From: Pseudomonas aeruginosa PAO1
GTDB lineage: Bacteria > Pseudomonadota > Gammaproteobacteria > Pseudomonadales > Pseudomonadaceae
NCBI RefSeq assembly: GCF_000006765.1
Contig: NC_002516.2
Strand: one strand, 5' to 3'
Length of the DNA stretch: 64,000 nucleotides
Shown here in pieces: positions 8,653 through 48,746 of the stretch (within the stretch, counting starts at the first letter, position 1; every line of letters begins with the position of its first letter). The notes under the pieces are model-generated. The model saw only the letters and a program-made list of their open reading frames with translations, was not told where the DNA came from and did not search any database. The translations under genes and the position numbers were made by a program.

Positions 8653-8682
8653 CAGCCCCTCGCCCGTGGGGGCGAGGGGCTG
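8653..8682 (-). terminator. Terminator hairpin after the pirin gene
   Basis: 13-bp perfect stem CAGCCCCTCGCCC/GGGCGAGGGGCTG, followed by CTTTCGTT on the minus strand, immediately after the stop at 8688. Confidence 0.65.
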
Positions 8683-8687: not shown

Positions 8688-9386
8688 TCAGGCCACTTCC
8701 ACCAGCAGCACTTCGCTGTCTTCCAGGGCGGTGACCTTCAGGGTCGGTTCGTCGCGTACCGCCAGGCCATCGCGGGCCTCGGCGCGCACGCCGTTGACCT
8801 CGATGCTGCCGGTGGCCGGCACCAGGTAGGCGCGGCGACCGTTTTCCAGGGCGTACTCGGCGCTCTGGCCGGCCTTCAGGGTCACCGCGGCGACCTCGGC
8901 GTCGGCGCGGATGTGCAGCGCTTCGCTGTCCTGCTCGTCGCCGCTGGCGAGAGTGACGAAACGACCGTCGCGCTCGGCCTTCGGGAACGGTTTGGAGCCC
9001 CAGCGCGGTTGGTCGCCGCGGCGGTCCGGGATGATCCAGATCTGGAAGATCCGGGTGGTCTCGGCTTCCAGGTTGTACTCCGAATGGACGATGCCGGTAC
9101 CGGCGCTCATCACCTGCACGTCACCGGCCTCGGTGCGGCCCTTGTTGCCCAGGCTGTCCTGGTGGGTGATCGCGCCTTCGCGGACATAGGTAATGATCTC
9201 CATGTCGCGGTGCGGGTGCGGCGGGAAGCCGCTGCCGGCGGCGATCTCGTCATCGTTCCAGACCCGCAGGCGGCCCCAGTCCTCGCGCTCCGGGTCATAG
9301 TAGTCGGCGAAGGAAAAATGATGACGCGCGTTCAGCCAGCCGTGGTTGGCATGGCCCAGACGGTCGAAGGGACGACGTTCGATCAT
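8688..9386 (-). CDS. Pirin/YhhW-like quercetinase-family protein, 232 aa
   Basis: HHFSFADYYDP, GFPPHPHRDMEIITYV, HQDSLG, MSAGTGIVHSE. Confidence 0.93.
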   Translation of the reverse strand: MIERRPFDRLGHANHGWLNARHHFSFADYYDPEREDWGRLRVWNDDEIAAGSGFPPHPHRDMEIITYVREGAITHQDSLGNKGRTEAGDVQVMSAGTGIVHSEYNLEAETTRIFQIWIIPDRRGDQPRWGSKPFPKAERDGRFVTLASGDEQDSEALHIRADAEVAAVTLKAGQSAEYALENGRRAYLVPATGSIEVNGVRAEARDGLAVRDEPTLKVTALEDSEVLLVEVA

Positions 9387-9503
9387 GATCGGATCTCCAT
9401 TGGGCCCGTCGCCGCTCGTTTGCGCGAGGGTGCGGGCGGTTGATGGGGTCATCATCCGTCAGATCATTGCGATAAAAAAGCGCGTATTTTTGGCTTTATC
9501 TAT

Positions 9504-10139
9504 CTAATTATTAGATTCGATAAGGGCACGAAGGAAGCGCGGGTCAGCCAGTACGGCGAGGTGCCCGCCCGGGTATTCCCGCACTCGCGCGTCCAGGCGG
9601 TGGGCGAAGGTACGTTGCAGCGGCGGCGGGCTGAGCCGGTCGGCGGCCGCCACAACGTAGGTGACCGGGCAGGCTGGACGAACCTGCCGCGGCGGGTCGA
9701 TCAGCAATTGCGCTGGCTCGCTGGCGCTGGTCGGCACCTCGGCGCCGAGCAGTTCGAGGAAGCCGGCGCGGTCTTCCAGGCGGACCCGCCCTCCGAGCGG
9801 GTCGAGGCGGCATAGCCCGAGGAGATTGTCCTGGCCGCTGTCCTGGTAGCTTTCCAGCGCGCCGCCGCCCTCGCTGACCAGCGCGCTGAACAGGTACAGG
9901 TGCGCGGCGCGCTCGCCCAGGCGGGCCGCCAGGCATTGCGCCAGGTAGCCGCCGAAGCTGTGGCCGCAGAGTATCACCCGCTCCTCGCCGGCCAGCGTGG
10001 CGGCGGCCTGGTCCAGCCAATGCGCCAGGTCGCATCCGGGCGCGTCGCGCAGATGGTCGCAGCTTCGCCAGCCGGCGCCTTCCACGGACCAGGCGGAGCG
10101 GCGCAGGAAAAATCCCGAGACCAGCAGCGCGCCGCTCAT
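9504..10139 (-). CDS. Alpha/beta hydrolase (esterase/thioesterase-like), last gene of the biosynthetic operon, 211 aa
   Basis: GHSFGG nucleophile elbow, ADRLSP, GGHLAVL. ATG overlaps the MFS stop (ATGA). Confidence 0.82.
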   Translation of the reverse strand: MSGALLVSGFFLRRSAWSVEGAGWRSCDHLRDAPGCDLAHWLDQAAATLAGEERVILCGHSFGGYLAQCLAARLGERAAHLYLFSALVSEGGGALESYQDSGQDNLLGLCRLDPLGGRVRLEDRAGFLELLGAEVPTSASEPAQLLIDPPRQVRPACPVTYVVAAADRLSPPPLQRTFAHRLDARVREYPGGHLAVLADPRFLRALIESNN

Positions 10140-11365
10140 CCGCCGGCCCGCTCGGCCTGGCGCAGGCCGACCGCGCCGACCTGCAGCAGCATGATCACCC
10201 CGCACAGCGCGGCCAGGCCGAGGTACAGCGCCTGGCTGCCGGCATGGTCGAGCATGATCCCGCCGTACAGCGGTGCCAGCGCGGTGCCGAGGCTGTAGAG
10301 ATTGGCCGCGCCGAAATAGCTGCCGCGCAAGTCGTCGGGGGTCAGTTGGTCGACCTCCACGCTGAAGGTCGGGAACACGATCAGTTCGCCGAGGCTGAGT
10401 ACCACCGTGGCCAGCGCCAGGCCGGCGAACAGGGTCACCGGGGTCCAGGCGAAGCCTAGCTGGGCCAGGAGCATGAGCAGCATGCCGAGCATCAGGCGGC
10501 CGCCGGTGCCGGTGTTTTCCAGCAGGCGGAGGAGGGGAAACTGGGCGACCACTATGGTCAGCGCGTTGATGGTCACCAGCAGGGCGATGCTGTTGACCAC
10601 GTCGGGCAGACCGCTGCGGGTGAGGTACTGCACGAGGGTCGAATCGAAGGTGGCGTAGATCAGCGCGGCCAGCATGTTGCACAGCAACAGCAGGGTGAAG
10701 GCGCGATGCCGGCCCATGCTCAGGCAGGCTTCGAGGAACCCCGTCGAGGATCGCGGGGCAAGGCTGCGCCGCTTAAGTTCGAGGTGGTGCAGCAGGCGCC
10801 AGAGCAGCAGGCCGTAGCAGAAGTAGACCAGCGCGGTGACCAGGAAGGTGCCGGCCTGGGCGGCGACGCCGAGAGTCAGGCCGATCAGCGGGCCGAGGGC
10901 GGCGCCGAGGTTGATCAGGAAGTACCGGCAGTAGAGCGCCAGTTCCCGCGAGCGGCGATCCTCGACGCGGTCGCCGATCAGCGCCTTGCAACTGGATTCG
11001 AGCAGGGCGCAGCCGATGCTCACCCCGGAGATCGCCAGTCCGTAGGACAGCGGCTGGCCGCTGAAGCCCAGCAACACGAAGGAAAGCCCGCTGAGGCTGG
11101 TGCCGAAGAAGATCAGGCGCTTGCGCCCGAAACGGTCCGACAGCCAGCCGGTGTAGATGCCGCTGAGCGCGCCGCAGACGGTCGCCAGCGCCAGCAGCAG
11201 GCCGATGGCGCTGGCGGACAGCCGGAACTCGCGCCACAGCAGCAATGCCAGGAACGGCCAGACCATGAAGTAGGCGCCGCGGGTCAGCAGCGTACCGACG
11301 AGCATCACGTGGATTTCCGTCGGCAGGGCGCGGAAGCGTTGCACGCTGAAGGTGTTGTCGCTCAC
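10136..11365 (-). CDS. MFS exporter, 409 aa
   Basis: About 12 hydrophobic segments; motif A GWLSDRFGRK. GTG start overlaps the upstream stop. Confidence 0.9.
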   Translation of the reverse strand: MSDNTFSVQRFRALPTEIHVMLVGTLLTRGAYFMVWPFLALLLWREFRLSASAIGLLLALATVCGALSGIYTGWLSDRFGRKRLIFFGTSLSGLSFVLLGFSGQPLSYGLAISGVSIGCALLESSCKALIGDRVEDRRSRELALYCRYFLINLGAALGPLIGLTLGVAAQAGTFLVTALVYFCYGLLLWRLLHHLELKRRSLAPRSSTGFLEACLSMGRHRAFTLLLLCNMLAALIYATFDSTLVQYLTRSGLPDVVNSIALLVTINALTIVVAQFPLLRLLENTGTGGRLMLGMLLMLLAQLGFAWTPVTLFAGLALATVVLSLGELIVFPTFSVEVDQLTPDDLRGSYFGAANLYSLGTALAPLYGGIMLDHAGSQALYLGLAALCGVIMLLQVGAVGLRQAERAGG

Positions 11366-12321
11366 GGGCGGGGCTCCTGGGCGAGGGGACGGATGCCGCC
11401 GCGCAGGCTGCCGGCGGCTACCTGGTGGAACAGCGGCAGGAAGCTTTCCGGCAGTTCGCGGGTGAACTCGCTGCTCAGCCAGCAGCGCAGCAGGCAGCGG
11501 CGCTGCCGCTCGTCGTCGCTGAACTCGGTGCGCGCGTGCAGGGTGGTGTGGTTGTTCACCAGCACCAGCATGCCCTTGCTGAAGTCCAGTTCGGCATAGC
11601 CGTCGGCGCGTTCGATCGCCTCGTCCAGGCCGTCGAGCATGCTTCGCACCTGCGGGGCGAGGCTTAGCCCGTGGCGCGTCACCGATTCGTTGAACTTGCG
11701 GATATAGCGCAAGACGAAGGTCCGCGGGGTTTCCGTGAGCAGCGGCACCAGCGCGTAGTCGGCGTCGCCTTCGTCGCGCAGGTCGTGGGGGATCGGCTGG
11801 CCGAGCAGGGGCAGCCAGGCCGGATTGGCGGCTTCCAGGGTGGCGAGGACGTCGGCCGAGGAACGGATGCGGAAGGCGCCGCCCCGGCGTGCCGGCGACC
11901 AGCAGGCGAGCACCGTGAGGTCGGCGCGATCGGAGTGGAAGGCCAATTCCTGGCTGGTCAGGTGGCCGCGCTGCGGCGCGTCGCGGGCGTCGCGCAGGCC
12001 GAGGTCGCGCACTTCCTTGAGGTACTCGCCGTTGCGGTTGATCGCCACGGTGCGTCCCAGCCATTGGCAGAATGCGCGGAACACCCGCTGGAATTCGTCC
12101 TCGGCGAGTCCGCGCAGCAGCGCGGAATCGTGCAGCAGCACGCCGCTTCCATGCTCCAGTTCGTGATGCAGGCGCTGGCGCAGGAGAGCCTCCGCGCTAT
12201 CCGCGGGACGCCGCTCCAGCAGGCGCGCGAACAGCGTTTCCAGGCCGGCGGCGAAAGCGGCCGAAGCGCAGAACACCGCGTTGCCCCGCCAGGGCGCGGG
12301 GCGACGATGGATGGTTGTCAT
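11362..12321 (-). CDS. TauD/clavaminate-synthase-like Fe(II)/2-oxoglutarate dioxygenase, 319 aa
   Basis: LAFHSDRADL (HxD), NNHTTLHAR, RCLLRCWL. ATGA overlap with the upstream gene. Confidence 0.85.
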   Translation of the reverse strand: MTTIHRRPAPWRGNAVFCASAAFAAGLETLFARLLERRPADSAEALLRQRLHHELEHGSGVLLHDSALLRGLAEDEFQRVFRAFCQWLGRTVAINRNGEYLKEVRDLGLRDARDAPQRGHLTSQELAFHSDRADLTVLACWSPARRGGAFRIRSSADVLATLEAANPAWLPLLGQPIPHDLRDEGDADYALVPLLTETPRTFVLRYIRKFNESVTRHGLSLAPQVRSMLDGLDEAIERADGYAELDFSKGMLVLVNNHTTLHARTEFSDDERQRRCLLRCWLSSEFTRELPESFLPLFHQVAAGSLRGGIRPLAQEPRP

Positions 12322-13916
12322 AGCGAGGCTCCGTATTCCTGCTGCCAGAGCGACAGGGTGGTGAGGGTGAACAACTGGTCGCCGGGCAGCGCCGCGACGC
12401 TCGGTGCATCCAGGCCTTCCAGGCCGAGGTCGTGGAGCGCCGGTAGGCGTTCGGCGAGGTGCCGGCGCATTTCCCCGAGGGCCTGCGGCCAACGTTCGAA
12501 CGGCAGGCGGAAATGCCGTTTCGGCTGCGCCTGCCAGCGTTTCTCGCGCTGCTCCAGGAGCGCCACCAGCGGTGCCTTGGCGGTGTCGCCGACGATCCGC
12601 TGGAGGCGCCCGGCGCGCTGCGCCAGGGCGCCATGCAGGTAGGGGGTGCGCGCTTCGATGGTGCGCGACATCAGCAGATGGTCGGCGCGGCGCAGCAGCG
12701 GCTCCAGCGAGTAGTGCAGGTCGAACTGGCCGATCGCCGCCTCGAGGCCCTGGCCGAGGGCCTCGTGGGCGAGTTCCTCGATCCGCTCGGCGACCCGTCG
12801 GCCCGCCGGTTCCGCCAGCAGCGCGGCCTTGCGCCGGTACTCGCCGAACCAGGCGGCGGCAAAGCGCCGCGGTTCCGGTGTGTCGCGCCGGCGCCAGAGT
12901 TCGAGATGGCGCGGGTAGCCCCAGAACAGTTCGTCGGCGCCTTCGCCGAGAAGCACGCAGTGATAGCCCTGCTCGCCGATACCGTCGGCCAGGCGCTGGT
13001 ACATCAGCAGGCTGGACATCCGTGTCGCCCCGCCGAAGTTGCCGACCGCGCGACGCAGCAGCGGCATGAAGGCTTCCTGGCGCAGCTCGAAGCGTTGCAG
13101 CCGAGGGTGTGGCAGCAGGCTTTCCTCGTCGCCTTCCAGGCACAGGTGAAAGCGTTGCAACTGCGGGTCCAGGTAGCTGCCGAGCAGGTTGGAATCGACC
13201 CCGCCGCTGACCAGCAGGGCGCAGGGGCGGAAGGTCTGGCGGCAGCGTTCGAGGGTTTCGCCGAGCTGCTCGTCGAGGCTGTCCACCTCGCTGGCCGGGG
13301 CGGTGGCCAGCCGCTGGCGCTGGCAGAGGCGCGGACGCTCCTGGGAGAGATCGAAGCGCAACACCTCGCCGGGCAGCAGCAGACGGACCTGCTGGAACAG
13401 GGTCTGGCCTTCCAGCGGCACGCCGGCGGCGACCACCTGGGCGATCGCCTCGGCGTCGGCGCGGGCGCCGCCGAGCAGGTGCAGCAGCGCCCGCGGCTCG
13501 GAGGCGAAGGCCAGCAGGCCGCGCTCGGGCTGGTAGCTGTAGTACAGCGGCTTGATGCCGAACTCGTCGCGCAGCAGGGTCAATTGCCGGGTCTGCGGGT
13601 CCCAGCTGGCGAGGGCGTACATGCCGTCCGGCAGTACCCCGCGCTGCAAGCCGTCGAGCAGCAGGCGGATCTCGCCATGGATTTCGCAGCCGGCCTGGTA
13701 GACCTCGCCGTTGTAGGCGACCCGCCGCTGACCCTCCTGCGGCGGCAGCGGTACCGCCGCGGCGCCGGACATCGGCAGGCGGGTCATGCCGATGGCGCCG
13801 TTCGGCAGGGCCGCGATGCCCTCGCCGAACGGGCCGCGATGGGCCAGCAGGCGTAGCGCTCCGGCGAAGCGCGAGACACTGAAACCGGTGCCGACGTAAC
13901 CGAGGATGCCGCACAT
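12318..13916 (-). CDS. Asparagine synthetase B-like amidotransferase / lactam-synthetase homologue, 532 aa
   Basis: N-terminal MCGILG (Ntn Cys), HRGP, RDEFGIKPLYY, PP-loop LVSGGVDSN, GEGADELFWGY. Confidence 0.88.
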   Translation of the reverse strand: MCGILGYVGTGFSVSRFAGALRLLAHRGPFGEGIAALPNGAIGMTRLPMSGAAAVPLPPQEGQRRVAYNGEVYQAGCEIHGEIRLLLDGLQRGVLPDGMYALASWDPQTRQLTLLRDEFGIKPLYYSYQPERGLLAFASEPRALLHLLGGARADAEAIAQVVAAGVPLEGQTLFQQVRLLLPGEVLRFDLSQERPRLCQRQRLATAPASEVDSLDEQLGETLERCRQTFRPCALLVSGGVDSNLLGSYLDPQLQRFHLCLEGDEESLLPHPRLQRFELRQEAFMPLLRRAVGNFGGATRMSSLLMYQRLADGIGEQGYHCVLLGEGADELFWGYPRHLELWRRRDTPEPRRFAAAWFGEYRRKAALLAEPAGRRVAERIEELAHEALGQGLEAAIGQFDLHYSLEPLLRRADHLLMSRTIEARTPYLHGALAQRAGRLQRIVGDTAKAPLVALLEQREKRWQAQPKRHFRLPFERWPQALGEMRRHLAERLPALHDLGLEGLDAPSVAALPGDQLFTLTTLSLWQQEYGASL

Positions 13917-15394
13917 CACGAGGCTTCCCGTTGCAGCAGGGCGGCGAGCGCACGGCGGTCGTGCTTGCCGGCGCCGTTCAGCGGCAGGGCCTGGTGCGAC
14001 AGCACCACGCGCTGTGGCGCGCGGAGGGTGCCGAGCTGCTGCTGGAGCCAGGGCAGGAAGGCGAACTCGACCTGCGGCGCGGTGTGGATCACGGCGACAT
14101 AGTCTTCGCCATAGAGCGGGCAGTCGACCTTCAGGCAGCAGACGTCGATCACCTCGTCCAGGCCGTTGAGCGCCCTTTCGCATTCATTCAGGTGGAACAG
14201 GTTGCCGCCCTTGTTGATGGTGCCGTCGCAACGGCCGAGGACGTGCACGCAGCGGTCCTCGTCGAAGTAGGCGAGGTCCTGGGTGTTCAGCCAGCCGTCC
14301 TCGAGCACCTGGGCGGTCAGGTCGGGGCGGTTGACGTAGCCGGAGAACAGGCTCGGCGTGCGCACCCACAGGCGCCCGCGTTCGCCGCTGCCCTCCAGCG
14401 GGCGGCCGTCGGGGTCGGTCAGCTTGAGTTCCAGGCCGACGGCAGGTCCCACCGAGTTGTCGAACGCATCGCCGCGACGCTTGCCGAAGAGGAAGGCGAA
14501 GCCGCACTCGCTGAGGCCGTAGATGTTCGCCAGCGCCGCGTAGTCGCGCTGGAAGGCCGCCTGCAGGTCGGCGTCCAGGCGCGCCGAGCCGGCGACGCAG
14601 AGCAGGCGCTGCAACGGCAAGCGGCGCGGCGGCGGGGAGCCTTCCTTGACCATGTGGTTGACCACCGGCGGCACCAGGTAGAGGAAACTGATGCCGAAGC
14701 GTTCCACGCATTCCCAGAAGCCTTCGCTGTCGGCCCAGCAGTGCAGCGGCAGGAGCACCGCGCTGCCGCCGTACAGCAGCGGGAAGAGGAAATTGATGCC
14801 GAGGATGCCCAGGCCGCTGATCCGGTAGAAGCAACCGGAGCGCGTGTGCTCGCCGATGCCCAGGCAGTCGCGGCCGATGCGGTAGGCATGGAGCATGGCC
14901 TGCTGGCTGAGTTCGATGCCTTTCGGCTGGCCGGTGGTGCCCGAGGTGAACAGGATCATATGGCTGTGCGCGGCGCGGTCGAGCCGGCGCGTCGCGCTGC
15001 GCTCGAAGTCCAGCGCCAGGCGCAGCCCGGCCAGCGCGCCCTCGAGCGGATGTTCGCTGGCCAGCGCTTCCAGGCGCATCTCGTCGACGATGGCCTGCTT
15101 CGCGGCCTCCCCCCACTCGGGATCGATCAGCACCAGATGCTTGCCCGCGCGCATGACCGCATAGATCAGGCAGAGGTTGCGGTAGCTGTTGTCGAGCAGC
15201 ACGCCGACACTGCGGCAGGCATGCGCGGCGATCTGCTCGGCGAGGGCATCGACCTGGCGGTCGGCGTCGCCCCAGGTGTATTCCAGCGGTCGCTCCGGCT
15301 CGCGGGCGTCGATCAGGAACGGCCGCCGCGGGTCGGCGCTGCCGAGATGGCGGAGGGTGCTGTCGAGCGATACGGGTACGGGGAGGCTGCTCAT
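13916..15394 (-). CDS. Stand-alone ANL-superfamily adenylating enzyme (acyl-CoA/amide ligase-like), 492 aa
   Basis: LFTSGTTGQPKG, YGLSECG, WLNTQDL, GAGKHDR; no carrier domain. Confidence 0.88.
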   Translation of the reverse strand: MSSLPVPVSLDSTLRHLGSADPRRPFLIDAREPERPLEYTWGDADRQVDALAEQIAAHACRSVGVLLDNSYRNLCLIYAVMRAGKHLVLIDPEWGEAAKQAIVDEMRLEALASEHPLEGALAGLRLALDFERSATRRLDRAAHSHMILFTSGTTGQPKGIELSQQAMLHAYRIGRDCLGIGEHTRSGCFYRISGLGILGINFLFPLLYGGSAVLLPLHCWADSEGFWECVERFGISFLYLVPPVVNHMVKEGSPPPRRLPLQRLLCVAGSARLDADLQAAFQRDYAALANIYGLSECGFAFLFGKRRGDAFDNSVGPAVGLELKLTDPDGRPLEGSGERGRLWVRTPSLFSGYVNRPDLTAQVLEDGWLNTQDLAYFDEDRCVHVLGRCDGTINKGGNLFHLNECERALNGLDEVIDVCCLKVDCPLYGEDYVAVIHTAPQVEFAFLPWLQQQLGTLRAPQRVVLSHQALPLNGAGKHDRRALAALLQREAS

Positions 15395-15403
15395 GCCGGC
15401 TCC

Positions 15404-16150
15404 TCAGCGATTCAGCGCGGTGAAGGCGTGGATGTCGAAGTTCACCGCCACCTGCGGCGCGCTCTCGATCTCGCGCACCGCGGCGATGAAGCGGTCGGCG
15501 TAGTCTTCGCCGCCTTCCTGCTCGATGTAGCGGGTCACGTAGCTGGTGGAGAGGAAGAACAGCGCGACCTCCTCCGGGCTGAGGAAGATGATGTTGGCGA
15601 ACACTTCGCGGCGGCAGTCGCGCAGGTGCGGGCAACTGCCCATGATCTCCAGGGTGTCGTCATAGCGGGTCAGGCGCGGATCACGGTGTTTGGCCCACTT
15701 GTTCACCAGTTCGTGCTCGATGAAGTCGCGCAGCGGCCCGTAGGCGATCGGGAAGTCGTACTTGTAGGCGCAGAACAGCCCGCCGGGGGTCAGCCAGTCG
15801 GCCATGCGCGTCAGCACCTGCTTGCGGTCCATCCAGTAGAAGGAGGTGGCGCTGGTGACCAGGTCGAAGCGGCGTTGCGGCGCGAAGGTTTCCGCCGGCG
15901 ACACGCTGAAGCGGATCTCCGGGTAGTTCTCGCGGGCCTTGGCGATCAGCGCCTCGCCCAGGTCGCTGCCTTCCACGTAGCGGAACCAGGGTTGCAGGCG
16001 GACGGTCGAGACGCCGTTGCCGCAGCCGATGTCCAGCGCCGCTTCGCGTGCCGGGGCGCGTTCGGCGAGGTTGCGGTAGAGCGAATCCGGATAGGCGATC
16101 TTGCCGCGGACCACGTTGTAGGCGTCTGCGTGCTTGTCGAACTGCTTCAT
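15404..16150 (-). CDS. Class I SAM-dependent methyltransferase (Tmt1/Tam-like small-molecule MTase), 248 aa
   Basis: ALDIGCGNG motif I, FDLVTSATSFYWMD, N-terminal Y..R...YP..LY pattern. Confidence 0.85.
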   Translation of the reverse strand: MKQFDKHADAYNVVRGKIAYPDSLYRNLAERAPAREAALDIGCGNGVSTVRLQPWFRYVEGSDLGEALIAKARENYPEIRFSVSPAETFAPQRRFDLVTSATSFYWMDRKQVLTRMADWLTPGGLFCAYKYDFPIAYGPLRDFIEHELVNKWAKHRDPRLTRYDDTLEIMGSCPHLRDCRREVFANIIFLSPEEVALFFLSTSYVTRYIEQEGGEDYADRFIAAVREIESAPQVAVNFDIHAFTALNR

Positions 16151-17514
16151 TGGGTAATCTCCAGTAGGCTCTCGTGGTAATCGCCCTTGTGGACGAAATT
16201 GATGTAGGTGCCGCTGCCGCCGAGGTAGCGGTAGCTGTGCTCGACGCCGGCGGGGATGAACACGCTGGCCGGGCTTTGCAAACGGCGCAGTTGGCCGCCG
16301 AGCAGGACTTCCACCTCCAGGCCGCGGTAGTCCTCGTCGCTGCCGAGGAACAGGAACACCGAGTCGCAGTTGTGCACGTGGCTGTCGACGTGGCCCGGCC
16401 CGCCGTCGCCGACGTCGTGGAACTGGCGGGCGATGAAATAGAACGGCGAGCCGTCGAGCAGGCGCCGGTCGAGCATGACGAAGCGCTTGCCGGGGCCGTG
16501 GCGGTGGTACTTCAGTTCGCTGGCGGATTTCTCGAAAGGCGTGAGGAACAGGGATTGGCGGTGCATCGGCGTGTAGCGTTGCAGCGAGACGCGGCCGTTG
16601 ATCAGTTCCGGATCGAAGGCGCTGTAGGCGTCCTGGTTTTCCTGCATGGCCAACTGGTGCAGGCGGGCGACATGGACGAAGGCGTTCTCGCCGACCACCG
16701 GGTGCATCGGCGAACGCTTGATCCGGCTGTGCGCCTCGACCAGCTCGGAGACCGCGAGGACGTTCTTCAGGTTGAAGCGGTCGGCGGCGAACTTGGTGTG
16801 CAGCAGGGTCAGCAACTGGAAGGTATCGGTGATCCCGGCGCGTTCGCCGATCCCGTTGCAGCTCGCCGAGTGCCACTGGACCCCGGCCTGGATCGCCGCC
16901 AGGGTGTTGCCCAGGGCCAGGCCGCGGTCGTTGTGCACGTGGTACTCGAAGACCACGTCGGGGAACTCGTGGCGCAGCAGCGAGAGCACGTCGAAGGTCT
17001 CGTCCGGCAGCAGGATGCCCACGCTGTCGGCGAAGCAGATGCGATCGGCGCCGGCGTCGCGCGCGGTGGCGATCATGCTGACCAGGTCGCTGACCGAGGT
17101 GCGCGCGGCGTCTTCCACCGTGGCCCGGACCCGCAGGCCGCGTTCGCGGGCGTAGCGGATCGCGTCGTGGAACAGTTCGAGCACCTCCTCGCGGTTCATG
17201 CCCTTGAACTTGGTTTCCAGCGAGATCGCGTTGATCGAGGCGAACAGCCCGACCCACTGCGCACCGGTTTCCAGCACCGCGTCGATATCCTCCCGGCGCG
17301 CCCGGGCGTGGGCCAGCACCGGCGTGGAAACCGCCGCCACCACGGCGCGTACCCGCTCGCGTTCGTCCGCGGAAATCCGCGGGTGGCCGCACTCGATCAT
17401 ATCCACCCCCAGCGCCGCGATTTCCCTCGCCAGCTGGACCGACTGCGCGCTGTCGAAGCTGCACTGGCGGGCCTGGCACCCCTCGCGCAGGGTGCAGTCG
17501 ATGACCCGGATCAT
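16147..17514 (-). CDS. IPMS/homocitrate-synthase-like DRE-TIM enzyme with C-terminal cupin domain, 455 aa
   Basis: DCTLREGCQ, EYHVHNDRGLA, GIGERAG; C-terminus HVDSHVHNCDS...VFIPAGVEH. Confidence 0.85.
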   Translation of the reverse strand: MIRVIDCTLREGCQARQCSFDSAQSVQLAREIAALGVDMIECGHPRISADERERVRAVVAAVSTPVLAHARARREDIDAVLETGAQWVGLFASINAISLETKFKGMNREEVLELFHDAIRYARERGLRVRATVEDAARTSVSDLVSMIATARDAGADRICFADSVGILLPDETFDVLSLLRHEFPDVVFEYHVHNDRGLALGNTLAAIQAGVQWHSASCNGIGERAGITDTFQLLTLLHTKFAADRFNLKNVLAVSELVEAHSRIKRSPMHPVVGENAFVHVARLHQLAMQENQDAYSAFDPELINGRVSLQRYTPMHRQSLFLTPFEKSASELKYHRHGPGKRFVMLDRRLLDGSPFYFIARQFHDVGDGGPGHVDSHVHNCDSVFLFLGSDEDYRGLEVEVLLGGQLRRLQSPASVFIPAGVEHSYRYLGGSGTYINFVHKGDYHESLLEITQ

Positions 17515-18389
17515 CGTCTCGCTCCCGCGTCCGAGGCCGACAGCGTCGCCAGCCGCGGCTCCCTGATGAAGTCGTGGATCTTCGGCGCATGACCGAACTG
17601 GCGGGAGAAACGGGCGAGGAAGGTGACCATCTTCAGCGAGTAGTCGCACAGCTGCGGAAGATAGTGGTCGAGGTTGTCCTCGGTGATTGCCTCGTCCGGG
17701 AACACGCTTTTCAGGTTGGAAGCGATCCAGGTTTTCATGCTGTCCTCTCGATTCAGTTGGTGGAATTCGTCGTCCTCGACGAAGACGATCGGCATGCCGA
17801 TGCGCAGCTGGCCGCTGCGGTTGTTGTGGCTGCCATGTGCGGTGCGGGCGGGCCAGACCAGGACGTCGCCGGCGTCCAGCTCGGCATCCACCAGTTGCTC
17901 GCGGGAAATGCCGTTGGCCTGTAGGTCGATGCACTTGAACATCGGGTAGGCGAGGTCGAATTCGTGAGGGAAGATCGTGCGGTCGTCGGGGTAATAGAAC
18001 ATCCCGCCGTTGTCGTTCCGCGATGGGGTCAGGGCGACCCAGAAGGTCTGCGCGCTTTCGTAGCGCTTCTCCCACAGCGCGATGTCCTGGTGCAGCGGGA
18101 TGTAGGACTCGTCGGCATGGCGCTTGATGAACGCCGCGTGGCGCAGCAGGCGCGGCTTGCGCAGATGGTCGCGGACCAGCGCGTCGAGCCCGGAACGGGC
18201 GAACCAGTCGTCCCAGAAGAGCGGATCGTGGCGGTGCAGGTTGCGCACCTTCTTCGCCTCGCGGCGCTCGTCGTCGGCGATGTCGAATTCCGGTTCCAGC
18301 GCCGGGTCCGGCCGCTGCGCCGCGGCGAGGATCCAGTCCAGCGCCTGTTGGCGCAATTGCGGGGATACCACCTGCCGATAGTGTTTCAT
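17511..18389 (-). CDS. PhyH-family Fe/2OG dioxygenase with C-terminal carrier-protein-like domain, 292 aa
   Basis: IPLHQD (HxD), FWVALT, TAHGSHNN; C-terminal ~75 aa with LCDYSLKMVTFLARF...IHDFIREPRLATLS. Confidence 0.8.
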   Translation of the reverse strand: MKHYRQVVSPQLRQQALDWILAAAQRPDPALEPEFDIADDERREAKKVRNLHRHDPLFWDDWFARSGLDALVRDHLRKPRLLRHAAFIKRHADESYIPLHQDIALWEKRYESAQTFWVALTPSRNDNGGMFYYPDDRTIFPHEFDLAYPMFKCIDLQANGISREQLVDAELDAGDVLVWPARTAHGSHNNRSGQLRIGMPIVFVEDDEFHQLNREDSMKTWIASNLKSVFPDEAITEDNLDHYLPQLCDYSLKMVTFLARFSRQFGHAPKIHDFIREPRLATLSASDAGARR

Positions 18390-19000
18390 TGGACGGACTC
18401 CTTGCTGACGGTGTGGACGATGAAATCGATCACCGCCGGGTCCTGCAGGGCCAGGTGGTGCGGACGCTCGCAGGGGAAGGTGTCGAGCCGCTCGATCAGG
18501 TCGCACCAGCGTTCGGCGGCCGGGTCGCGGCCGGCGTCGTCCCGGCAGCGCACCCAGCTGGCGCGGGCGAGGCGATGGCGGGGCTGCCAGCGGCCGAACA
18601 GCTCGACATTGCGCAGCAGGACCTCTTCGCGCAGTTCGCCAAGCTCGCTCATCAGGGCGATCCATTCGCGCATCTCGGCGCTCAGCCAGCGCTGGTATTG
18701 CTCGCTCGGCGGCATTCGCCGCAGGGCCGGCCAGGGCAGGTGGCTGTCGATCATCAGCAGGCGGCTGGCCGGCAACTGGCGGGCCATCTCGTAGCCGACC
18801 AGGCCGCCGAAGGAATAGCCGATCAGCCAGTCCGGTTCTTCCGCCAGGCCGTCGAGTACCTGGCTGGCGAGGGCTTCGATGCTGGCGTAGGCATCCAGCC
18901 GGTGGTAGTCGACCAGCCGGCAGTCCGTTGCGCCGAGGCGTGCCAGCAGCCCGCGGAAGCAGCTCGGGTGGCCGATGAAGTCAGGCAGCAGGATCAGCAT
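18386..19000 (-). CDS. Stand-alone thioesterase (NRPS TE-like), 204 aa
   Basis: WLIGYSFGGLVGYEMA, LMIDS, C-terminal HHLALQDP. Confidence 0.85.
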   Translation of the reverse strand: MLILLPDFIGHPSCFRGLLARLGATDCRLVDYHRLDAYASIEALASQVLDGLAEEPDWLIGYSFGGLVGYEMARQLPASRLLMIDSHLPWPALRRMPPSEQYQRWLSAEMREWIALMSELGELREEVLLRNVELFGRWQPRHRLARASWVRCRDDAGRDPAAERWCDLIERLDTFPCERPHHLALQDPAVIDFIVHTVSKESVQ

Positions 19001-20256
19001 GGGCGTAGCGCCTCGGCCATGGCCGCCGCCAGCGCCAGGGTCCGTTCGCGGCCGAAGCGGCTGGCCAGGCTGGCGTCCCAGCCGCCGTCGTCGCGCCGGA
19101 CCAGGGTCAGGGTCAGCGGCAGGCGGCTCTTCAGTGTCGGCCGGTGGATGAACCCGGCGCTGTGGAATGGCTGGTCGATGACATTGATCATCACCTGGGC
19201 GTCGGCATAGCGCAGCCCGGCCCGTTCGGCGATGGCCTCCGCCGGCAGCAGGCTGTGCTCGAAGGCCTCGAGCCTGTGTCGTTCGAAGGTGTCCTCGGCG
19301 GTCGCGGCGTCCAGCAACAGCGGCACCAGGTTCAGCCAGCAACCGGAAACCGCCGTGCCTCGGCGACTGCGCAGGCTGACCGGGGTCAGCGCCAGGACCT
19401 TGCCGGTGGCGCCCTGGCTGGCCAGGGCGAGAGCCAGGGCGCAGGCGAGCCGGGTCAGCAGGGCGGCTTCGCCGCCTCCTGGCGTGGCAGCCAAGCGGAA
19501 ATCCTCGCAATGGCTGGCGCGCTCCGCCCAGGGCAGGCTCGCCAGTTCACGGAACGCCTCGCCGCGCTCGCTCCAGTAGTCTTCCAGCCTGGTCCTGCGC
19601 TCGCGCAGCTGGCGCTCCAGGCGCCATTGCTGCTGGAGGAAGCCGAACTCGGGGGCCGCCGCTTCGGTCGTGGGGTCGGCGTTGAGCACGGCCAGGCGGG
19701 CCAGCAGCACGCTGGCGAAGTCGGCGTCGGCGACCAGGTGATGCAGCCAGACGCCCCAGCGCGCACGTCCTCCGCAGCGCCCGTGGAACAGTCGCAGCAG
19801 GCCGCGCTCGAACAGGGAATGCGGGCGTTGCAGCAGCGCTGCGATGAGCGCGTTTTCGTCGGCGAAGGGGCCGACTTCCAGCGCCGGGCTCTCCTCGGGC
19901 TGCCCGTGGACGACCAGTTCGAAACCTTCCGCGCCGCTGTCCACCTGGCTGTCGAGCAACGGGAACTCTTCGCGCAGGCGCCGTCCCAGGCGCGTCAGGT
20001 CGGATGCCGGCACCTCGGCCGGAGCCAGGTAGCAGAGGCCGAAGCGGGTCAGGTCGGCGCCGAGCAGCTCGCTGAAGACCATCCCGCAGGACCAGGGCGA
20101 CAGGTCGACGCGCAAGGACTGCGCGGCCTCATCCGGCATCGGTTGGTGCCGCAGGCGGTCGCGCTCGGAGGGGGACAGGCGGTGCCAATCGCCGACCACC
20201 ACCAGGTGCTCGCGGAACCAGTGGTAGCGCACCTCCGCGGAGAGACCGACGTTCAT
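18994..20256 (-). CDS. Stand-alone condensation-domain-like protein, 420 aa
   Basis: GVWLHHLVADA (HHxxxD motif), PVSLR...CWLNLVPL. ATG overlaps the NRPS stop. Confidence 0.78.
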   Translation of the reverse strand: MNVGLSAEVRYHWFREHLVVVGDWHRLSPSERDRLRHQPMPDEAAQSLRVDLSPWSCGMVFSELLGADLTRFGLCYLAPAEVPASDLTRLGRRLREEFPLLDSQVDSGAEGFELVVHGQPEESPALEVGPFADENALIAALLQRPHSLFERGLLRLFHGRCGGRARWGVWLHHLVADADFASVLLARLAVLNADPTTEAAAPEFGFLQQQWRLERQLRERRTRLEDYWSERGEAFRELASLPWAERASHCEDFRLAATPGGGEAALLTRLACALALALASQGATGKVLALTPVSLRSRRGTAVSGCWLNLVPLLLDAATAEDTFERHRLEAFEHSLLPAEAIAERAGLRYADAQVMINVIDQPFHSAGFIHRPTLKSRLPLTLTLVRRDDGGWDASLASRFGRERTLALAAAMAEALRPC

Positions 20257-22109
20257 GCCGCGCTCCTCGACAGCACCAGCGGCTGCTCCGGCGTCGCCGC
20301 CCGTTCCAGCAGACGCTCCGGCGCCAGGCCGTGGCTGCGCAGGAGACGGCTGAACTGGTCGAGGCGCGAGTTTGCCTGCAAGTCGGCGAGTCCCAGATTT
20401 GCTCCCGCACCCGCCGATTGACAGAGGGCGACCAGTTGCAGGGCGAGCAACGAGTTGCCGCCGCAGAGGAAGAAATCCTGGTCGGCGGCGCCGACCTCGC
20501 AACCCAGCAATTCGCTCCACAGCTGCGCGCAGCCGCGTTGGTCGGGATCGAGCGCGCTGGCGCAGCGCTCCAGCGGTTCTTCCAGGCGGCGCAGCAGGGC
20601 GGCGCGGTCCAGCTTGCCGTGTGCCGTCAAGGGCAAGGCCTCGACCCGGACGCAGGCATGCGGGCGCTGCCAGGTGGGCAGTTGGCGGAGCAGGGCCTGC
20701 GGGCTGGCGTCGGCTTTTCCCGTCCAGGCGCAGAGCAGTTGCTTGACGCCGTTGCGCTCGCGGACCAGCAGGGCGCAGTCGAGGATGCCCGGCTGGCGGC
20801 GGAAGCGCTGTTCCAGGGCGGGGAGGTCGAGGCGATAGCCGTTCAGCTTGACCTGGCCATCGCCGCGGCCGATGAAGCGCAGCCGGCCCTGCTCGTCGTA
20901 GCGAGCGCGGTCGCCGGTACGGTAGGCACGCAGGAGGCGGCCGCGATAGGGCAACTCGACGAAGCTGGCGCGGGTGCGCGCCGCATCGTTCCGATAACCC
21001 TGCGCCAGGCCGGCGCCGAAGGCGACGATCTCCCCGGCCCGGTCGGGCTCGGCGATCTCCTGTCCGTGCTCGTCGAGCAGGAGCACCGCGGTGCCGGCGA
21101 TGGCCTTGCCGATGGGGATGTCGTCTTCCTCGAGGTCGTCGTCGGTGACGACATGGCAGCAGGTGAAGGTGGTGTTCTCCGTCGGTCCGTAGCCATTCAC
21201 CAGGTGCAGTCGCGGATGCCGCAGCAGCGCCCGGCGCACGTGCGGCACCGAGAGGATGTCGCCGCCGGTGAGCAACTGGCGAAGGCCGCCGAGACAGTCC
21301 GGGTCGAGGTCCACCAGGGTGTTGAACAGCGAGGCGGTGAGCCAGGCGCTGTCGGCTCCGCGCTCTCCGATCAACTGGCGCAGCACGCCCGGGTCGAGGG
21401 GGCCGAGGTCGTTCAGCACGCAGCAGCCGCCGTTGAGCAGCGCACCCCAGATCTCCAGGGTCGCCGCATCGAAGGACAGCGGCGAGTTCACCAGGAAGCG
21501 CATCTGCGGAGCGAACGCGAGGAACGACTGGCCCAGGCACAGGCGGGTAATGCCGGCGTGGGTGCAGGCGATGGCTTTCGGGCGGCCGGTGGTGCCCGAG
21601 GAGAAGTTGATGTAGGCGATCTGGTCCGCCGCGAAGCATGGCCGGGCGACCGAGGCTGGAGCGGCAGGCAGGTGCCTGACCGGGACGCAGGGAAGACCGT
21701 TGGCGGGCGTCGGCGTGGTCGAGCAGTCGAGGATCAGGCGGCAGTCGACCTGCCGGCACAACTCTGCATTCCAGGCCGCCGGTTGTTTCAGGTCTATATA
21801 TAAGTAGTGATGGCCGGATAACAGTATGGCGAGCAGGCAGGTAATGCTTTCCCGAGAATATTCGCCGTACACTCCAAGACAAACTCCCGGCTGCGGATAA
21901 TGCTCGAGAAGATAGTCTGAAAGTTGTTCGGCGCTATCCAGGAGTTGCCGATAGTCGACACTTCCGAAACGGTCCCTGATGGCTTCGCGATGGGGATGAA
22001 GCGCTGCCATTTCGCTGAAGCGGGCCACCACCGTCGGGTGCGCGTACAGGTCGAGCAGGGAGTTCTGGGACATTCTGACAATCGCCTTTTTTCGAAAAAA
22101 TGAGTCCAT
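20253..22109 (-). CDS. NRPS adenylation-thiolation didomain (Val-type specificity code), 618 aa; PA1221 orthologue
   Basis: A3 FSSGTTGRPK, A4 SFDAATLEIW, A5 NGYGPTENTTF, A7 YRTGD, A10 HGKLDR; T motif FFLCGGNSLLA. Start MDSFF at 22109. Confidence 0.93.
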   Translation of the reverse strand: MDSFFRKKAIVRMSQNSLLDLYAHPTVVARFSEMAALHPHREAIRDRFGSVDYRQLLDSAEQLSDYLLEHYPQPGVCLGVYGEYSRESITCLLAILLSGHHYLYIDLKQPAAWNAELCRQVDCRLILDCSTTPTPANGLPCVPVRHLPAAPASVARPCFAADQIAYINFSSGTTGRPKAIACTHAGITRLCLGQSFLAFAPQMRFLVNSPLSFDAATLEIWGALLNGGCCVLNDLGPLDPGVLRQLIGERGADSAWLTASLFNTLVDLDPDCLGGLRQLLTGGDILSVPHVRRALLRHPRLHLVNGYGPTENTTFTCCHVVTDDDLEEDDIPIGKAIAGTAVLLLDEHGQEIAEPDRAGEIVAFGAGLAQGYRNDAARTRASFVELPYRGRLLRAYRTGDRARYDEQGRLRFIGRGDGQVKLNGYRLDLPALEQRFRRQPGILDCALLVRERNGVKQLLCAWTGKADASPQALLRQLPTWQRPHACVRVEALPLTAHGKLDRAALLRRLEEPLERCASALDPDQRGCAQLWSELLGCEVGAADQDFFLCGGNSLLALQLVALCQSAGAGANLGLADLQANSRLDQFSRLLRSHGLAPERLLERAATPEQPLVLSRSAA

Positions 22110-22421
22110 CTGCCGGCTTCTTCGGCTAAATGAAGGATTTTTGGTTTTTCGCGAAGACGGCGGCCGAGTCTTCCCGGGCTCTGCCAGTCGTCCGCCGCCC
22201 ACCGGCTCGCTCACGCGAGCGGCAAGCGTCGAGGCGCCTTGCCCGGAAAAACCGTTATGGAAATACGGAGTGCCGTCGACTCAAGGGCAGTCAACTGCTG
22301 CCATGCAGTCTTATCGTCAGGAAAGAGAGAAAAGCGATGAGAATGGATTCACGGTCACGCATTGCACTTCCACCTTGCGTTGGTTTTCCGAAGTGTTTCG
22401 CTGTGTGTGTTTTTATATGTT

Positions 22422-22479
22422 TCGTGGGTATTTAAAATAAGATACAAATTTCCCCTCACAACTATGAGAATTGGTAGTT
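22422..22479 (-). promoter_or_regulatory. las/rhl (lux-type) box with putative -10 driving the biosynthetic operon
   Basis: 22460-22479 reads AACTACCAATTCTCATAGTT on the minus strand (CT-N12-AG with 5-bp dyad arms). A TATTTT hexamer begins 20 nt downstream, fitting a box centred near -42. Confidence 0.75.
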
Positions 22480-47076: not shown

Positions 47077-47096
47077 ACCTGGCAGAACTGACAGGT
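47077..47096 (+). promoter_or_regulatory. las box upstream of aprX
   Basis: ACCTGGCAGAACTGACAGGT: CT-N12-AG with dyad ACCTG/CAGGT, close to the lasB OP1-type consensus. Confidence 0.8.
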
Positions 47097-47415: not shown

Positions 47416-48660
47416 ATGGGATTATTCAATGCAGCCGCGAACCTGTTCGGCCAGGTCTACGAGCGCGCGACGCAGGTGGCCGCCACCGCCGTCACGGCGG
47501 TGGCGGACGTGGCCAGGACATTGGTGGGCTCCACCGTCGACGCCGTGGAGCAGCAGGTGCACGAAGCGCTGACATCGGTGCATGACGCCGTTGCCAGCGT
47601 GGAGCAGGCGCTGGAGGGTACGGTCGGCGCGGTGGCCGGCACGCTCGGCGAGATCGCCGGCGACGCCCTCGACACCGTAGGCTCCGCGGTCGGCACGCTG
47701 GGCGGGCTGGCCGGCAACTCGCTGGCGATCGCCGACGACTTGTTGCACGGGCGCGTCGAGCCGGAGGATTACCTGAAGCTGGTCGGTGACCTGGGGCAGG
47801 GCGTCGGTGCCACCGTCGGCCATGCCTGGGAATTCGGCAGCGACAGCCTGAAGGCCGCCAACGATCTCTACCACGCCGCCTACCAGGGTGGCTCGCTAAG
47901 CCTCGGCAACAGCGACGGCCTGCTCGGGGTCAATGTGATCGGCTCGCTGCTCGGCGGCAATCACGACCAGGGCGTGATTCCCGATAGCCGCGGCATCCTC
48001 GGCCCGCTGCCGATCAACGTCTCCTTCACCGAGCAAGGCCTGACCTTCGGCGGCGAGACGCCGCTGACTCCGCTGGTCACCGCAGCCCTGGCGCTGAATC
48101 CGATCACCGCGCCGCTGGTGCCGGTGCTGGCGCCGCTCAACCTCGGCGGCCTGGGAGTGGTCGGCTCGGTCGACAAGGAAGGCTTCAGCGCCAAGTTCTA
48201 CGGTATCGCCGGACCCAGCTACAACCTCGGCGTGGCCAATCTCGGCGGCACCCTGGAGCTGGGTAGCTACAACGAGGTCAAGCTGCTGAGCTGGAACGAG
48301 GTGACCCTCAAGGACCTGCCCATCGTCGGCGGCATCCTCGGCTACGTGCCGGTGGTCAAGGACATCGGTGTCTCGCTGCCGACGCTGGACCTGCACTTCG
48401 ACAGCAAGCTGTATGCGCAAACGATTGCCGGTGTCGATGTCGCCGGGGTCGGGCCGAAGGGCCAGATCGAGCTGGTGCATGACCTCGACAATGACCTGTC
48501 GATCGTCGCCGGTATCGCCGGGGATACCGCGCACAGCGCACTGGACGGGGCCGGCAAGGTGCTCGCGGCGCTGCTCGGCCACGGCGGCGAAGCGGCGCCG
48601 CCGACAATCCAGCTGATCGGCGCCGACCCGGCGCCGGAGCATCAGGCCCTGGCCGCCTGA
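47416..48660 (+). CDS. aprX: AprX, Gly/Val/Leu-rich Apr type I secretion substrate of unknown function, 414 aa
   Basis: Immediately upstream of aprD; RBS GAGGA; no N-terminal signal peptide; C-terminal IQLIG. Confidence 0.85.
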   Translation: MGLFNAAANLFGQVYERATQVAATAVTAVADVARTLVGSTVDAVEQQVHEALTSVHDAVASVEQALEGTVGAVAGTLGEIAGDALDTVGSAVGTLGGLAGNSLAIADDLLHGRVEPEDYLKLVGDLGQGVGATVGHAWEFGSDSLKAANDLYHAAYQGGSLSLGNSDGLLGVNVIGSLLGGNHDQGVIPDSRGILGPLPINVSFTEQGLTFGGETPLTPLVTAALALNPITAPLVPVLAPLNLGGLGVVGSVDKEGFSAKFYGIAGPSYNLGVANLGGTLELGSYNEVKLLSWNEVTLKDLPIVGGILGYVPVVKDIGVSLPTLDLHFDSKLYAQTIAGVDVAGVGPKGQIELVHDLDNDLSIVAGIAGDTAHSALDGAGKVLAALLGHGGEAAPPTIQLIGADPAPEHQALAA

Positions 48661-48746
48661 CGGCGAGGGAACGCCCGGCACAGGGAGGTGCCATCCGGGC
48701 TCATTCGGGATTCCAGCGGCAGTCGTGGCAGAAGTGAGCGCGCTCG

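Follow-up and report, generated by a model that had tools for sequence, protein, structure and literature searches.

The orphan, quorum-controlled PA1221–PA1211 operon of Pseudomonas aeruginosa encodes a cupin-fused homocitrate synthase-like enzyme and may direct the synthesis of an amidated N-acyl-valine

Results

The PA1221–PA1211 locus comprises 11 intact, co-oriented genes

Pseudomonas aeruginosa has few secondary metabolite clusters, and products have been assigned for most of them. Here, we analyze one that is quorum- and RpoH-induced, linked to virulence, and encodes an enzyme bound by a phage protein, and yet is without a product, i.e., the PA1221–PA1211 locus, within a stretch of 64,000 nucleotides of strain PAO1 (contig NC_002516.2; hereafter, the window, with a GC content of ~68%). 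Based on third-position GC frame analysis and tracing of open reading frames (ORFs), the locus consists of 11 minus-strand genes that fill positions 9504-22109 exactly. The first gene matches the PA1221 structure (PDB 4DG8/4DG9) over its full length with 1415 bits, and the locus is, therefore, PA1221–PA1211 of P. aeruginosa. This locus has already been treated in the literature as an orphan operon, and our literature searches, covering papers up to July and September 2026, revealed no assigned product. The genes and their parts are as follows.

22109-20253, minus strand: PA1221 (G1), nonribosomal peptide synthetase (NRPS) didomain of an adenylation (A) and a carrier (T) domain, 618 aa
20256-18994, minus strand: PA1220 (G2), divergent free-standing condensation (C) domain, 420 aa
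19000-18386, minus strand: PA1219 (G3), small thioesterase (TE), 204 aa
18389-17511, minus strand: PA1218 (G4), PhyH-type oxygenase and carrier (T) domain
17748-18389, minus strand: N-terminal part of PA1218, PhyH-type oxygenase that depends on iron and 2-oxoglutarate (Fe/2OG oxygenase); Pfam PhyH, 127 bits; HQD at aa 100-102
17511-17747, minus strand: C-terminal part of PA1218, second T (carrier) domain; Ser of the DYSL motif at aa 249-252
17514-16147, minus strand: PA1217 (G5), Claisen synthase and cupin
16558-17514, minus strand: N-terminal part of PA1217, Claisen-condensing TIM barrel; Pfam HMGL-like, 203 bits; E11, H69, R130/T132; HxH at 192-194
16147-16557, minus strand: C-terminal part of PA1217, fused metal-binding cupin; H375, H379, H381, D384, H426
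16150-15404, minus strand: PA1216 (G6), class I S-adenosylmethionine (SAM) methyltransferase, 248 aa
15394-13916, minus strand: PA1215 (G7), ANL adenylate-forming ligase, 492 aa
13916-12318, minus strand: PA1214 (G8), AsnB-like glutamine amidotransferase (predicted), 532 aa
12321-11362, minus strand: PA1213 (G9), TauD-family Fe/2OG oxygenase, 319 aa
11365-10136, minus strand: PA1212 (G10), MFS efflux transporter, 409 aa
10139-9504, minus strand: PA1211 (G11), small alpha/beta hydrolase, 211 aa

A preliminary description of this DNA, made from the letters alone, had recorded 11 co-oriented genes with eight of ten junctions overlapping as ATGA, GTGA, or TGATG, and both points are borne out here. 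A ninth junction, between PA1220 and PA1219, overlaps by 7 bp, bringing the overlaps to nine of ten and leaving PA1216 and PA1215, with a gap of 9 bp, as the sole separated pair. By motif inspection, the catalytic motifs are intact in every enzyme of the locus. The A-T, TE, PhyH, HMGL-like, methyltransferase, ANL, Asn_synthase plus GATase, TauD, MFS, and alpha/beta hydrolase assignments are above the Pfam thresholds, and Pfam and NCBIfam agree with the enzyme classes named in the preliminary description for A-T, TE, PhyH, methyltransferase, ANL, AsnB-like, MFS, and esterase/hydrolase proteins. The C domain of PA1220, the carrier of PA1218, and the cupin of PA1217 score below these thresholds and, thus, required further evidence; homologs, a profile search against the PDB, and AlphaFold upheld all three. 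The anatomy described earlier is right: the cluster has three enzymes that activate carboxyl groups with ATP, two carriers, a pair of Fe/2OG oxygenases, an exporter, and a hydrolase. As also stated in that description, there is no phosphopantetheinyl transferase (PPTase) or MbtH gene: a scan for MbtH and Sfp-type PPTase motifs found none in the window, and Pfam found no PPTase in the cluster. P. aeruginosa is served by the unlinked PPTase PcpS.

PA1217 has the signature of homocitrate synthases and a fused metal-binding cupin

By sequence and fold, the barrel of PA1217 is closest to the homocitrate synthase (HCS) of Sulfolobus (6KTQ; 202 bits, 34% identity), followed by Lys4 of Schizosaccharomyces pombe (3IVS) and then the HCS of Thermus (2ZTJ). 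In the alignments, three features of PA1217 are also present in the HCS structures, i.e., Glu as the metal ligand in TLREG, His in AH.R, and Arg together with Ser/Thr in VR.(S/T)xED. These three positions are occupied by Asp, Leu/Ile, and Glu/Gln/Asn, in this order, in the enzymes 2-isopropylmalate synthase (IPMS), citramalate synthase, and methylthioalkylmalate (MAM) synthase. The HCS-type residues of PA1217 are invariant in 60 homologs. The His and Arg of this signature would hold the distal carboxylate of 2-oxoglutarate, as in published HCS structures; a literature search for these specificity residues gave no confirmation of their roles.

Purified PA1217 has been reported to consume acetyl-CoA while no 2-isopropylmalate was formed from 3-methyl-2-oxobutanoate (ketoisovalerate). 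We infer from the residue signature that PA1217 takes a 2-oxo-dicarboxylate, which would explain the negative outcome of this IPMS assay. Thus, the earlier call of a single Claisen synthase stands, while its assignment to the IPMS/alkylmalate type does not hold up against the HCS-type residues and the lack of isopropylmalate formation.

The cupin makes up the C-terminal 135 residues of PA1217 and is modeled by AlphaFold with a pLDDT of 93-94. In fold comparisons, MarH and a related non-heme iron epimerase/lyase came first (PDB 6J4B and 7EQK; 24-26% identity, E ~1e-7), and the residues His375, His379, His381, Asp384, and His426 are invariant in homologs. MarH-type enzymes bind 2-oxo acids at the metal and enolize C3.

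The family is also linked to carrier proteins. At least nine PA1217 homologs carry a C-terminal extension with a DSL motif. When carrier-like sequences were scanned, three of five passed Pfam PP-binding, i.e., the extensions of two homologs and a stand-alone 80-residue protein (locus L008). In some other loci of this type, a carrier gene lies directly upstream of the synthase gene, and other homologs are fused to a second, divergent methyltransferase-like domain. Coupling of a Claisen enzyme of this family to a carrier protein, as these sequences suggest, would be unusual.

The NRPS parts have intact motifs, and the ANL ligase is associated with carriers

PA1221 matches Pfam AMP-binding and PP-binding and contains the motifs SSGTTGRPK and GK as well as a carrier Ser in GGNSL (aa 550-554). 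It has been reported to activate valine, consistent with the valine-activating A-T didomain named for the first gene in the preliminary description. The HHxxxD motif of PA1220 reads HHLVAD (aa 172-177). While a word-based homolog search with this protein returned P. aeruginosa proteins only, an exhaustive search identified 35 relatives among 1.8 billion representatives, and HH...D is conserved among them. Some of these relatives score above the Pfam Condensation cutoff or make up the C-terminal domain in A-T-X proteins, and in the PDB the family profile matched NRPS C domains only (LgrA, 7e-11). By these comparisons, PA1220 is predicted to be a true condensation domain. PA1219 scores 38.8 bits against the Pfam Thioesterase cutoff of 26.4 and has the motif GYSFG.

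Taken alone, the C-terminal piece of PA1218 reaches only E=0.06 for Pfam PP-binding. However, the C-terminal 80 residues of PA1218 are 52% identical to a 75-aa stand-alone protein of Chromobacterium that does pass Pfam PP-binding, and in Xenorhabdus the carrier piece is a separate small ORF. A PDB sequence search with PA1218 gave no match.

PA1215 matches Pfam AMP-binding and has the A3, A5, A8, and A10 motifs. Its nearest relatives in the PDB are A domains together with feruloyl-, oxalate-, and malonyl-CoA ligases, and the lactone synthetase CysF (8RA0) is missing from its 60 best PDB matches. A PA1215-like ligase and a carrier protein co-occur in nine of nine loci, and no carrier was found in the loci that lack the ligase. 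This constant association points to PA1215 as a putative carrier-loading ligase.

PA1214 is a predicted glutamine amidotransferase

PA1214 matches Pfam Asn_synthase and GATase_7 and contains an N-terminal MCGILG, in which Cys2 follows the initiator Met, as well as HRGP and NGE of the glutamine site and SGGVDS of the ATP pyrophosphatase loop, i.e., the residues expected of a class II glutamine amidotransferase. An N-terminal Met-Cys is present in all 17 AsnB-like proteins examined across loci (17/17), and nearly all have the RGP motif. The beta-lactam synthetases BLS and CarA are not known to have this N-terminal Cys nucleophile. The preservation of the Cys is the reason why we predict PA1214 to act as a glutamine amidotransferase and not as a beta-lactam synthetase. 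Its best PDB match, to the hydroxyamidotransferase 7YLZ, is weak (54 bits, N-terminal domain only), as are the AsnB matches that follow.

PA1213 matches Pfam TauD and has the motifs HSD and HTTLHAR. Its best PDB match is FrbJ, and it also weakly matches the glutarate dioxygenase GlaH/CsiD. PGAP names it as a member of the "clavaminate synthase family", and the preliminary description had likewise called it clavaminate synthase-like; however, there was no clavaminate synthase among its PDB matches at E<=0.01, and we abandon that label. PA1216 matches Pfam Methyltransf_25/11; the nearest NCBIfam models are those of the carboxyl methyltransferases BioC and Tam (trans-aconitate), with scores far below cutoff, and matches to other solved methyltransferases are weak. 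SAM binding by PA1216 has been demonstrated experimentally. PA1212 matches Pfam MFS_1 with 138 bits and is nearest to the NCBIfam model of the efflux transporter YdeE, while PA1211 matches Pfam Abhydrolase_6 and has the motif GHSFG.

A synthase–amidotransferase–oxygenase core recurs across phyla

All 11 genes are found in the same order in Xenorhabdus stockiae and Xenorhabdus sp. BG5 as well as in Chromobacterium phragmitis and Serratia rubidaea, and in the last species an Sfp-type PPTase gene adjoins the cluster. The family of cupin-fused synthases is broad. A core consisting of this synthase, the AsnB-like enzyme, and the TauD-type oxygenase recurs across phyla, i.e., in Proteobacteria, Actinobacteria, and Firmicutes, and was seen in Acinetobacter, an Alteromonadaceae genome, Pseudomonas lijiangensis, Streptomyces, Kitasatospora, Hyphomicrobium, Tateyamaria, Halomonas, Vibrio, and others. 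Variable partners of the core are the PA1216-like methyltransferase, PhyH, the ANL ligase with a carrier, the MFS transporter, and a hydrolase, together with A and T-C proteins in some cases or two ATP-grasp ligases in others; the Halomonas and Vibrio relatives have two ATP-grasp ligases and an MFS transporter. Enzymes of the tricarboxylic acid (TCA) cycle type are frequent neighbors: Streptomyces has an aconitase gene, Halomonas and Vibrio have PrpF, and P. lijiangensis and Acinetobacter have citrate synthase, with a fumarase gene also near the core in P. lijiangensis. These neighbors fit a chemistry of tricarboxylic or dicarboxylic acids. In the literature, we found no cluster that combines an IPMS, an asparagine synthetase, and a clavaminate synthase.

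The synthase also occurs in a second context, where its partners are two adenylating enzymes of the ThiF type as well as a hydrolase and an MFS transporter. In Bacillus mycoides (L022, 2333-7158) and a metagenome-assembled genome of the Burkholderiales (L034, 7219-12650), the cupin-fused synthase is accompanied by two ThiF-type enzymes and an alpha/beta hydrolase; L034 also has an MFS transporter and L022 a small membrane protein. By gene content, these ThiF-associated loci of Firmicutes and some Betaproteobacteria may represent a different, uncharacterized small-molecule pathway. In Burkholderia glumae (L081, 7653-12507), a gene of the LuxR family, encoding an autoinducer-binding domain and a GerE domain, immediately precedes a fatty-acid-hydroxylase-like gene, a cupin-fused synthase gene, and a TauD gene, in a locus without an AsnB-like gene, and forms a further link of the synthase family to quorum-type regulators.

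Some copies of the cluster appear decayed. In S. rubidaea (L084), the AsnB, PhyH, and TE genes are split; in Serratia silvae (L006), only fragments of the PA1217, PA1215, and PA1214 homologs are left; and in Xenorhabdus bakwenae (L002), the homologs of PA1221 to PA1218 are missing. These cases could be real gene loss or assembly error. Within P. aeruginosa, the distal half of the cluster is 100% identical in the clinical isolate 2014S05-249 (L085, 1379-11406 of NZ_CP131792.1, an 847-kb record typed as a plasmid), where phage genes directly abut a shortened PA1215 homolog of 1044 bp instead of 1479 bp. Thus, some P. aeruginosa strains appear to have a prophage inserted in the operon.

A candidate lux-type box precedes the operon

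The upstream and downstream features of the operon are as follows.

22460-22479, minus strand: lux-type (las/rhl) box AACTACCAATTCTCATAGTT, 351-370 bp upstream of the PA1221 start codon, candidate by sequence
22110-22459, minus strand: promoter-proximal region of lower GC (falling to ~0.55) and long 5' leader
8688-9455, minus strand: pirin gene (Pfam Pirin), 48 bp downstream of PA1211 with no terminator between
8653-8682, minus strand: strong terminator downstream of the pirin gene

The lux-type box had been noted in the preliminary description. The bare CT-N12-AG motif is not significant, with 167 matches in the window against ~190 expected; by contrast, the extended dyad ACTA-N10-TAGT occurs once in the window versus 0.02 expected and is, thus, unique. 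Expression from a PA1221 promoter-gfp fusion has been reported to depend on RhlR and PqsE, in agreement with the density regulation suggested earlier, and the box at 22460-22479 may be the site through which RhlR, with PqsE, drives the operon. The leader is unusually long, with ~320 nt from the expected transcription start to the ATG. A search of the leader upstream of PA1221 for a sigma-70 consensus, a terminator, or Rfam families was negative, and the lack of a sigma-70 consensus fits an activator-dependent promoter. RpoH has been reported to induce PA1211–PA1221 by 2- to 80-fold, with PA1216 and PA1217 responding most strongly and far above PA1221; a crude scan inside the cluster found no sigma-32-like promoter. 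Several phenotypes have been linked to the operon in the literature: PA1216 is needed for virulence in Caenorhabditis elegans, a ΔPA1211-15 mutant produces less N-(3-oxododecanoyl)-homoserine lactone (3OC12-HSL), and Qst, an early protein of phage LUZ19, binds PA1217.

The pirin gene is probably cotranscribed with the operon, yet it lies outside the conserved cluster, and the syntenic loci in Xenorhabdus, Chromobacterium, and Serratia have no such gene. Another lux-type dyad, ACCTGGCAGAACTGACAGGT, is near perfect, with eight of ten paired positions; it is present at 47077-47096, ~320 bp upstream of a plus-strand operon (47416-55070) for a 414-aa protein without Pfam matches, an exporter of the ABC type, an outer-membrane factor, and a metalloprotease of the serralysin type that has RTX repeats. 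This operon appears to be the alkaline protease (apr) locus for type I secretion, i.e., an ordinary quorum-controlled virulence operon.

Discussion

Here, we suggest that the product of PA1221–PA1211 is a small, polar, exported N-acyl-L-valine in which the acyl group is a tailored hydroxy-polycarboxylic acid of the homocitrate/citrate type that carries a primary amide. We hold this assignment tentatively, as somewhat short of probable. It builds on the gene content, the intact motifs, and the regulation, as well as on the valine activation, SAM binding, and lack of IPMS activity known from the literature, while the substrate class, the order of steps, the use of the carriers, and the product itself are predictions from sequence. 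In the proposed pathway, PA1217 would condense an acetyl unit with a 2-oxo-dicarboxylate, e.g., 2-oxoglutarate or oxaloacetate, while its MarH-like cupin may bind or enolize the 2-oxo acid and the adjacent carrier domain may cooperate. PA1216 would then methylate the acid, most likely as a carboxyl ester that is perhaps transient, and PA1214 would turn one carboxylate into a carboxamide using glutamine-derived ammonia. PA1213 and the PhyH domain of PA1218, one or both, would hydroxylate or otherwise oxidize the acid. Subsequently, the ANL ligase PA1215 would adenylate an acid and load it onto the carrier domain of PA1218, and the C domain PA1220 would couple the acyl group to valine on PA1221. 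Finally, PA1219 would release the product, PA1211 would remove the ester, and PA1212 would export the molecule.

Several observations weigh against this proposal. No product has ever been detected, and all of the chemistry is read from the encoded proteins. The roles of the three specificity residues of PA1217 are assigned by analogy with HCS structures, and the cupin could be regulatory. The P. aeruginosa cluster is itself without an aconitase or PrpF gene. In a published thermal-shift screen of PA1216, valine esters showed no measurable binding and the effect of organic acids was not significant, such that this screen yields no usable clue to the substrate. Moreover, PA1216 could be a C-methyltransferase with a 2-oxo acid as its substrate instead of an O-methyltransferase, and PA1215 could still cyclize a free acid, as CysF does.

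The last point leads to the alternative closest to existing annotation, in which the product is a cystargolide-like beta-lactone joined to valine: PA1216 would methylate an alkylmalate to its ester, PA1215 would form the lactone, PA1211 would take off the ester, and the NRPS parts would add the valine. In cystargolide/belactosin biosynthesis as described in the literature, the IPMS CysA, the methyltransferase CysG, the ANL lactone synthetase CysF, the hydrolase CysE, and the MFS protein CysB act together with an amide-bond synthetase and an ATP-grasp ligase that add valine. The same classes, i.e., Claisen synthase, SAM methyltransferase, ANL enzyme, alpha/beta hydrolase, and MFS exporter, are encoded here, with the synthase, methyltransferase, and ANL genes adjacent and valine in the expected product; moreover, the oxalate- and malonyl-CoA ligases that are among the neighbors of PA1215 are also the nearest solved relatives of CysF. 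The label that antiSMASH gives to this region in the literature is NRPS-like/betalactone, and the beta-lactone idea of the preliminary description is, thus, an existing automatic annotation and not a new inference. However, CysA is an ordinary LeuA-type IPMS that is 58% identical to the housekeeping enzyme and has no reported cupin, whereas PA1217 has the HCS signature, a fused cupin, and no isopropylmalate-forming activity. Likewise, PA1215 is without specific similarity to CysF and always occurs with a carrier protein, whereas CysF uses a free acid; PA1216 matches other solved methyltransferases weakly; and valine would be added by A-T, C, and TE proteins instead of stand-alone ligases. The conserved amidotransferase, both oxygenases, and the second carrier, which are all additional in PA1221–PA1211, would be left without a role. 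Altogether, we consider a beta-lactone unlikely. A beta-lactam, which the preliminary description had also entertained, would come as a considerable surprise. Here, PA1214 would act as a beta-lactam synthetase with PA1213 as a clavaminate synthase-like partner, as in the clavam, carbapenem, and tabtoxin routes, and it is true that AsnB-like, "clavaminate synthase family", and MFS genes lie side by side. Nevertheless, the N-terminal Cys with HRGP and NGE in PA1214, the invariance of this Cys in the family, and FrbJ as the best solved relative of PA1213 all speak against it, and the cluster has no gene of the carboxyethylarginine synthase (CEAS) or CarB type for the beta-amino acid precursor. 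Overall, the earlier chemical reading of the locus is partly supported, and a strained ring, be it a beta-lactone or an epoxide, is possible but has no specific support and is not favored by the evidence.

Two other alternatives retain the amidotransferase. In the dapdiamide route of Pantoea, an ANL ligase and an AsnB-like amidotransferase are used, and Val, Ile, or Leu is attached, such that the product may carry valine. By analogy, the hydroxy acid made by PA1217 could be dehydrated to a fumarate- or aconitate-like acid, amidated by PA1214, epoxidized or otherwise oxidized by an Fe/2OG enzyme while tethered to a carrier, and conjugated to valine, giving an electrophile that mimics glutamine. 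All enzyme classes of that route on which the comparison turns, i.e., an acid activator, a glutamine amidotransferase for a terminal carboxamide, a TauD oxygenase with a carrier-tethered substrate, valine conjugation, and an exporter, have counterparts in PA1221–PA1211; DdaC, the TauD-type enzyme of dapdiamide biosynthesis, has been described to epoxidize a fumaramoyl substrate tethered to an A-T protein. The aconitase, PrpF, or fumarase genes of related clusters could supply the double bond, and the Halomonas and Vibrio relatives with two ATP-grasp ligases and an MFS transporter resemble clusters for peptide antimetabolites. However, the clusters of P. aeruginosa, Xenorhabdus, and Chromobacterium have no dehydratase gene, diaminopropionate genes are absent, a C domain takes the place of the ATP-grasp ligase, and the acid would be built by a dedicated Claisen synthase whereas fumarate is taken in the dapdiamide route. 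We regard this alternative as quite unlikely. It is still less likely that the product is an actinonin-like inhibitor of metalloproteases or deformylase, i.e., a substituted succinamic acid or hydroxamate joined to valine, with PA1214 installing the amide or hydroxylamine and an oxygenase supplying the N-OH. In actinonin/matlystatin biosynthesis, an AsnB-like enzyme has been reported to amidate a substituted four-carbon diacid, i.e., a succinyl unit, and an NRPS joins valine; a 2-substituted malate has this succinate backbone, and the best solved relative of PA1214 is a hydroxyamidotransferase. Yet, that match is weak and confined to the N-terminal domain. Moreover, the skeleton in those pathways comes from a CCR (crotonyl-CoA carboxylase/reductase) and a mutase and the N-OH from an AurF-like enzyme, and none of these genes is present here, nor is there an extra deformylase or protease resistance gene nearby. 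Neither the TauD nor the PhyH family is known to include an enzyme that forms an N-OH of this kind.

The individual enzymes of the homocitrate-type pathway that we propose also have relatives elsewhere. The PA1217 barrel resembles HCS in overall identity and in its specificity residues. The frb pathway for FR-900098 uses an HCS-like enzyme, FrbC, and carries an aconitase. Likewise, the best solved relative of PA1213 is the TauD-like FrbJ of this pathway, and the Streptomyces relatives of the cluster carry an aconitase. PA1217 differs from these systems in that a metal cupin replaces the regulatory domain of HCS and in that its relatives are carrier fused, and the cluster has neither lysine-pathway nor phosphonate genes. 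The MarH-type epimerases/lyases provide the best matches to the predicted fold of the cupin, which here is fused to a Claisen synthase. By gene content, the pathway would, thus, differ from every characterized system with which we compared it. Three further candidates were set aside. A TauD match on a Pantoea plasmid, considered as DdaC, lies in another cluster, which has ThiF, GNAT, and ATP-grasp genes; a link to Ham/fragin was dropped because the papers show that HamB is a cupin only and that the LeuA gene lies outside that cluster; and gammanonin, an actinonin-like compound of Gammaproteobacteria, is made by an unrelated NRPS-PKS cluster.

More broadly, the cupin-fused and often carrier-fused HCS-like enzyme, the N-terminal nucleophile (Ntn) amidotransferase, and the TauD oxygenase might together define a widespread, uncharacterized family of pathways in which tricarboxylic acids give rise to amide antimetabolites or signals; in P. 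aeruginosa, the operon would be a version that is under quorum control and conjugates valine. We regard this wider idea as possible but doubtful.

The elements that are new here are the homocitrate-type synthase, the predicted coupling to carriers and obligatory amidation, and the core conserved across phyla. If our proposal is correct, the search target shifts from a lipophilic isopropyl beta-lactone or a beta-lactam to a polar, amide-bearing valine conjugate, and this affects the choice of extraction, chromatography, labeled precursors, and in vitro substrates. The conserved core provides nonpathogenic organisms in which the shared chemistry can be solved. An enzyme of the IPMS/HCS family that performs a Claisen condensation with a carrier instead of, or besides, acetyl-CoA would be new enzymology. 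For P. aeruginosa, the product would account for the reported links of this operon to virulence in worms, to 3OC12-HSL, and to Qst of phage LUZ19.

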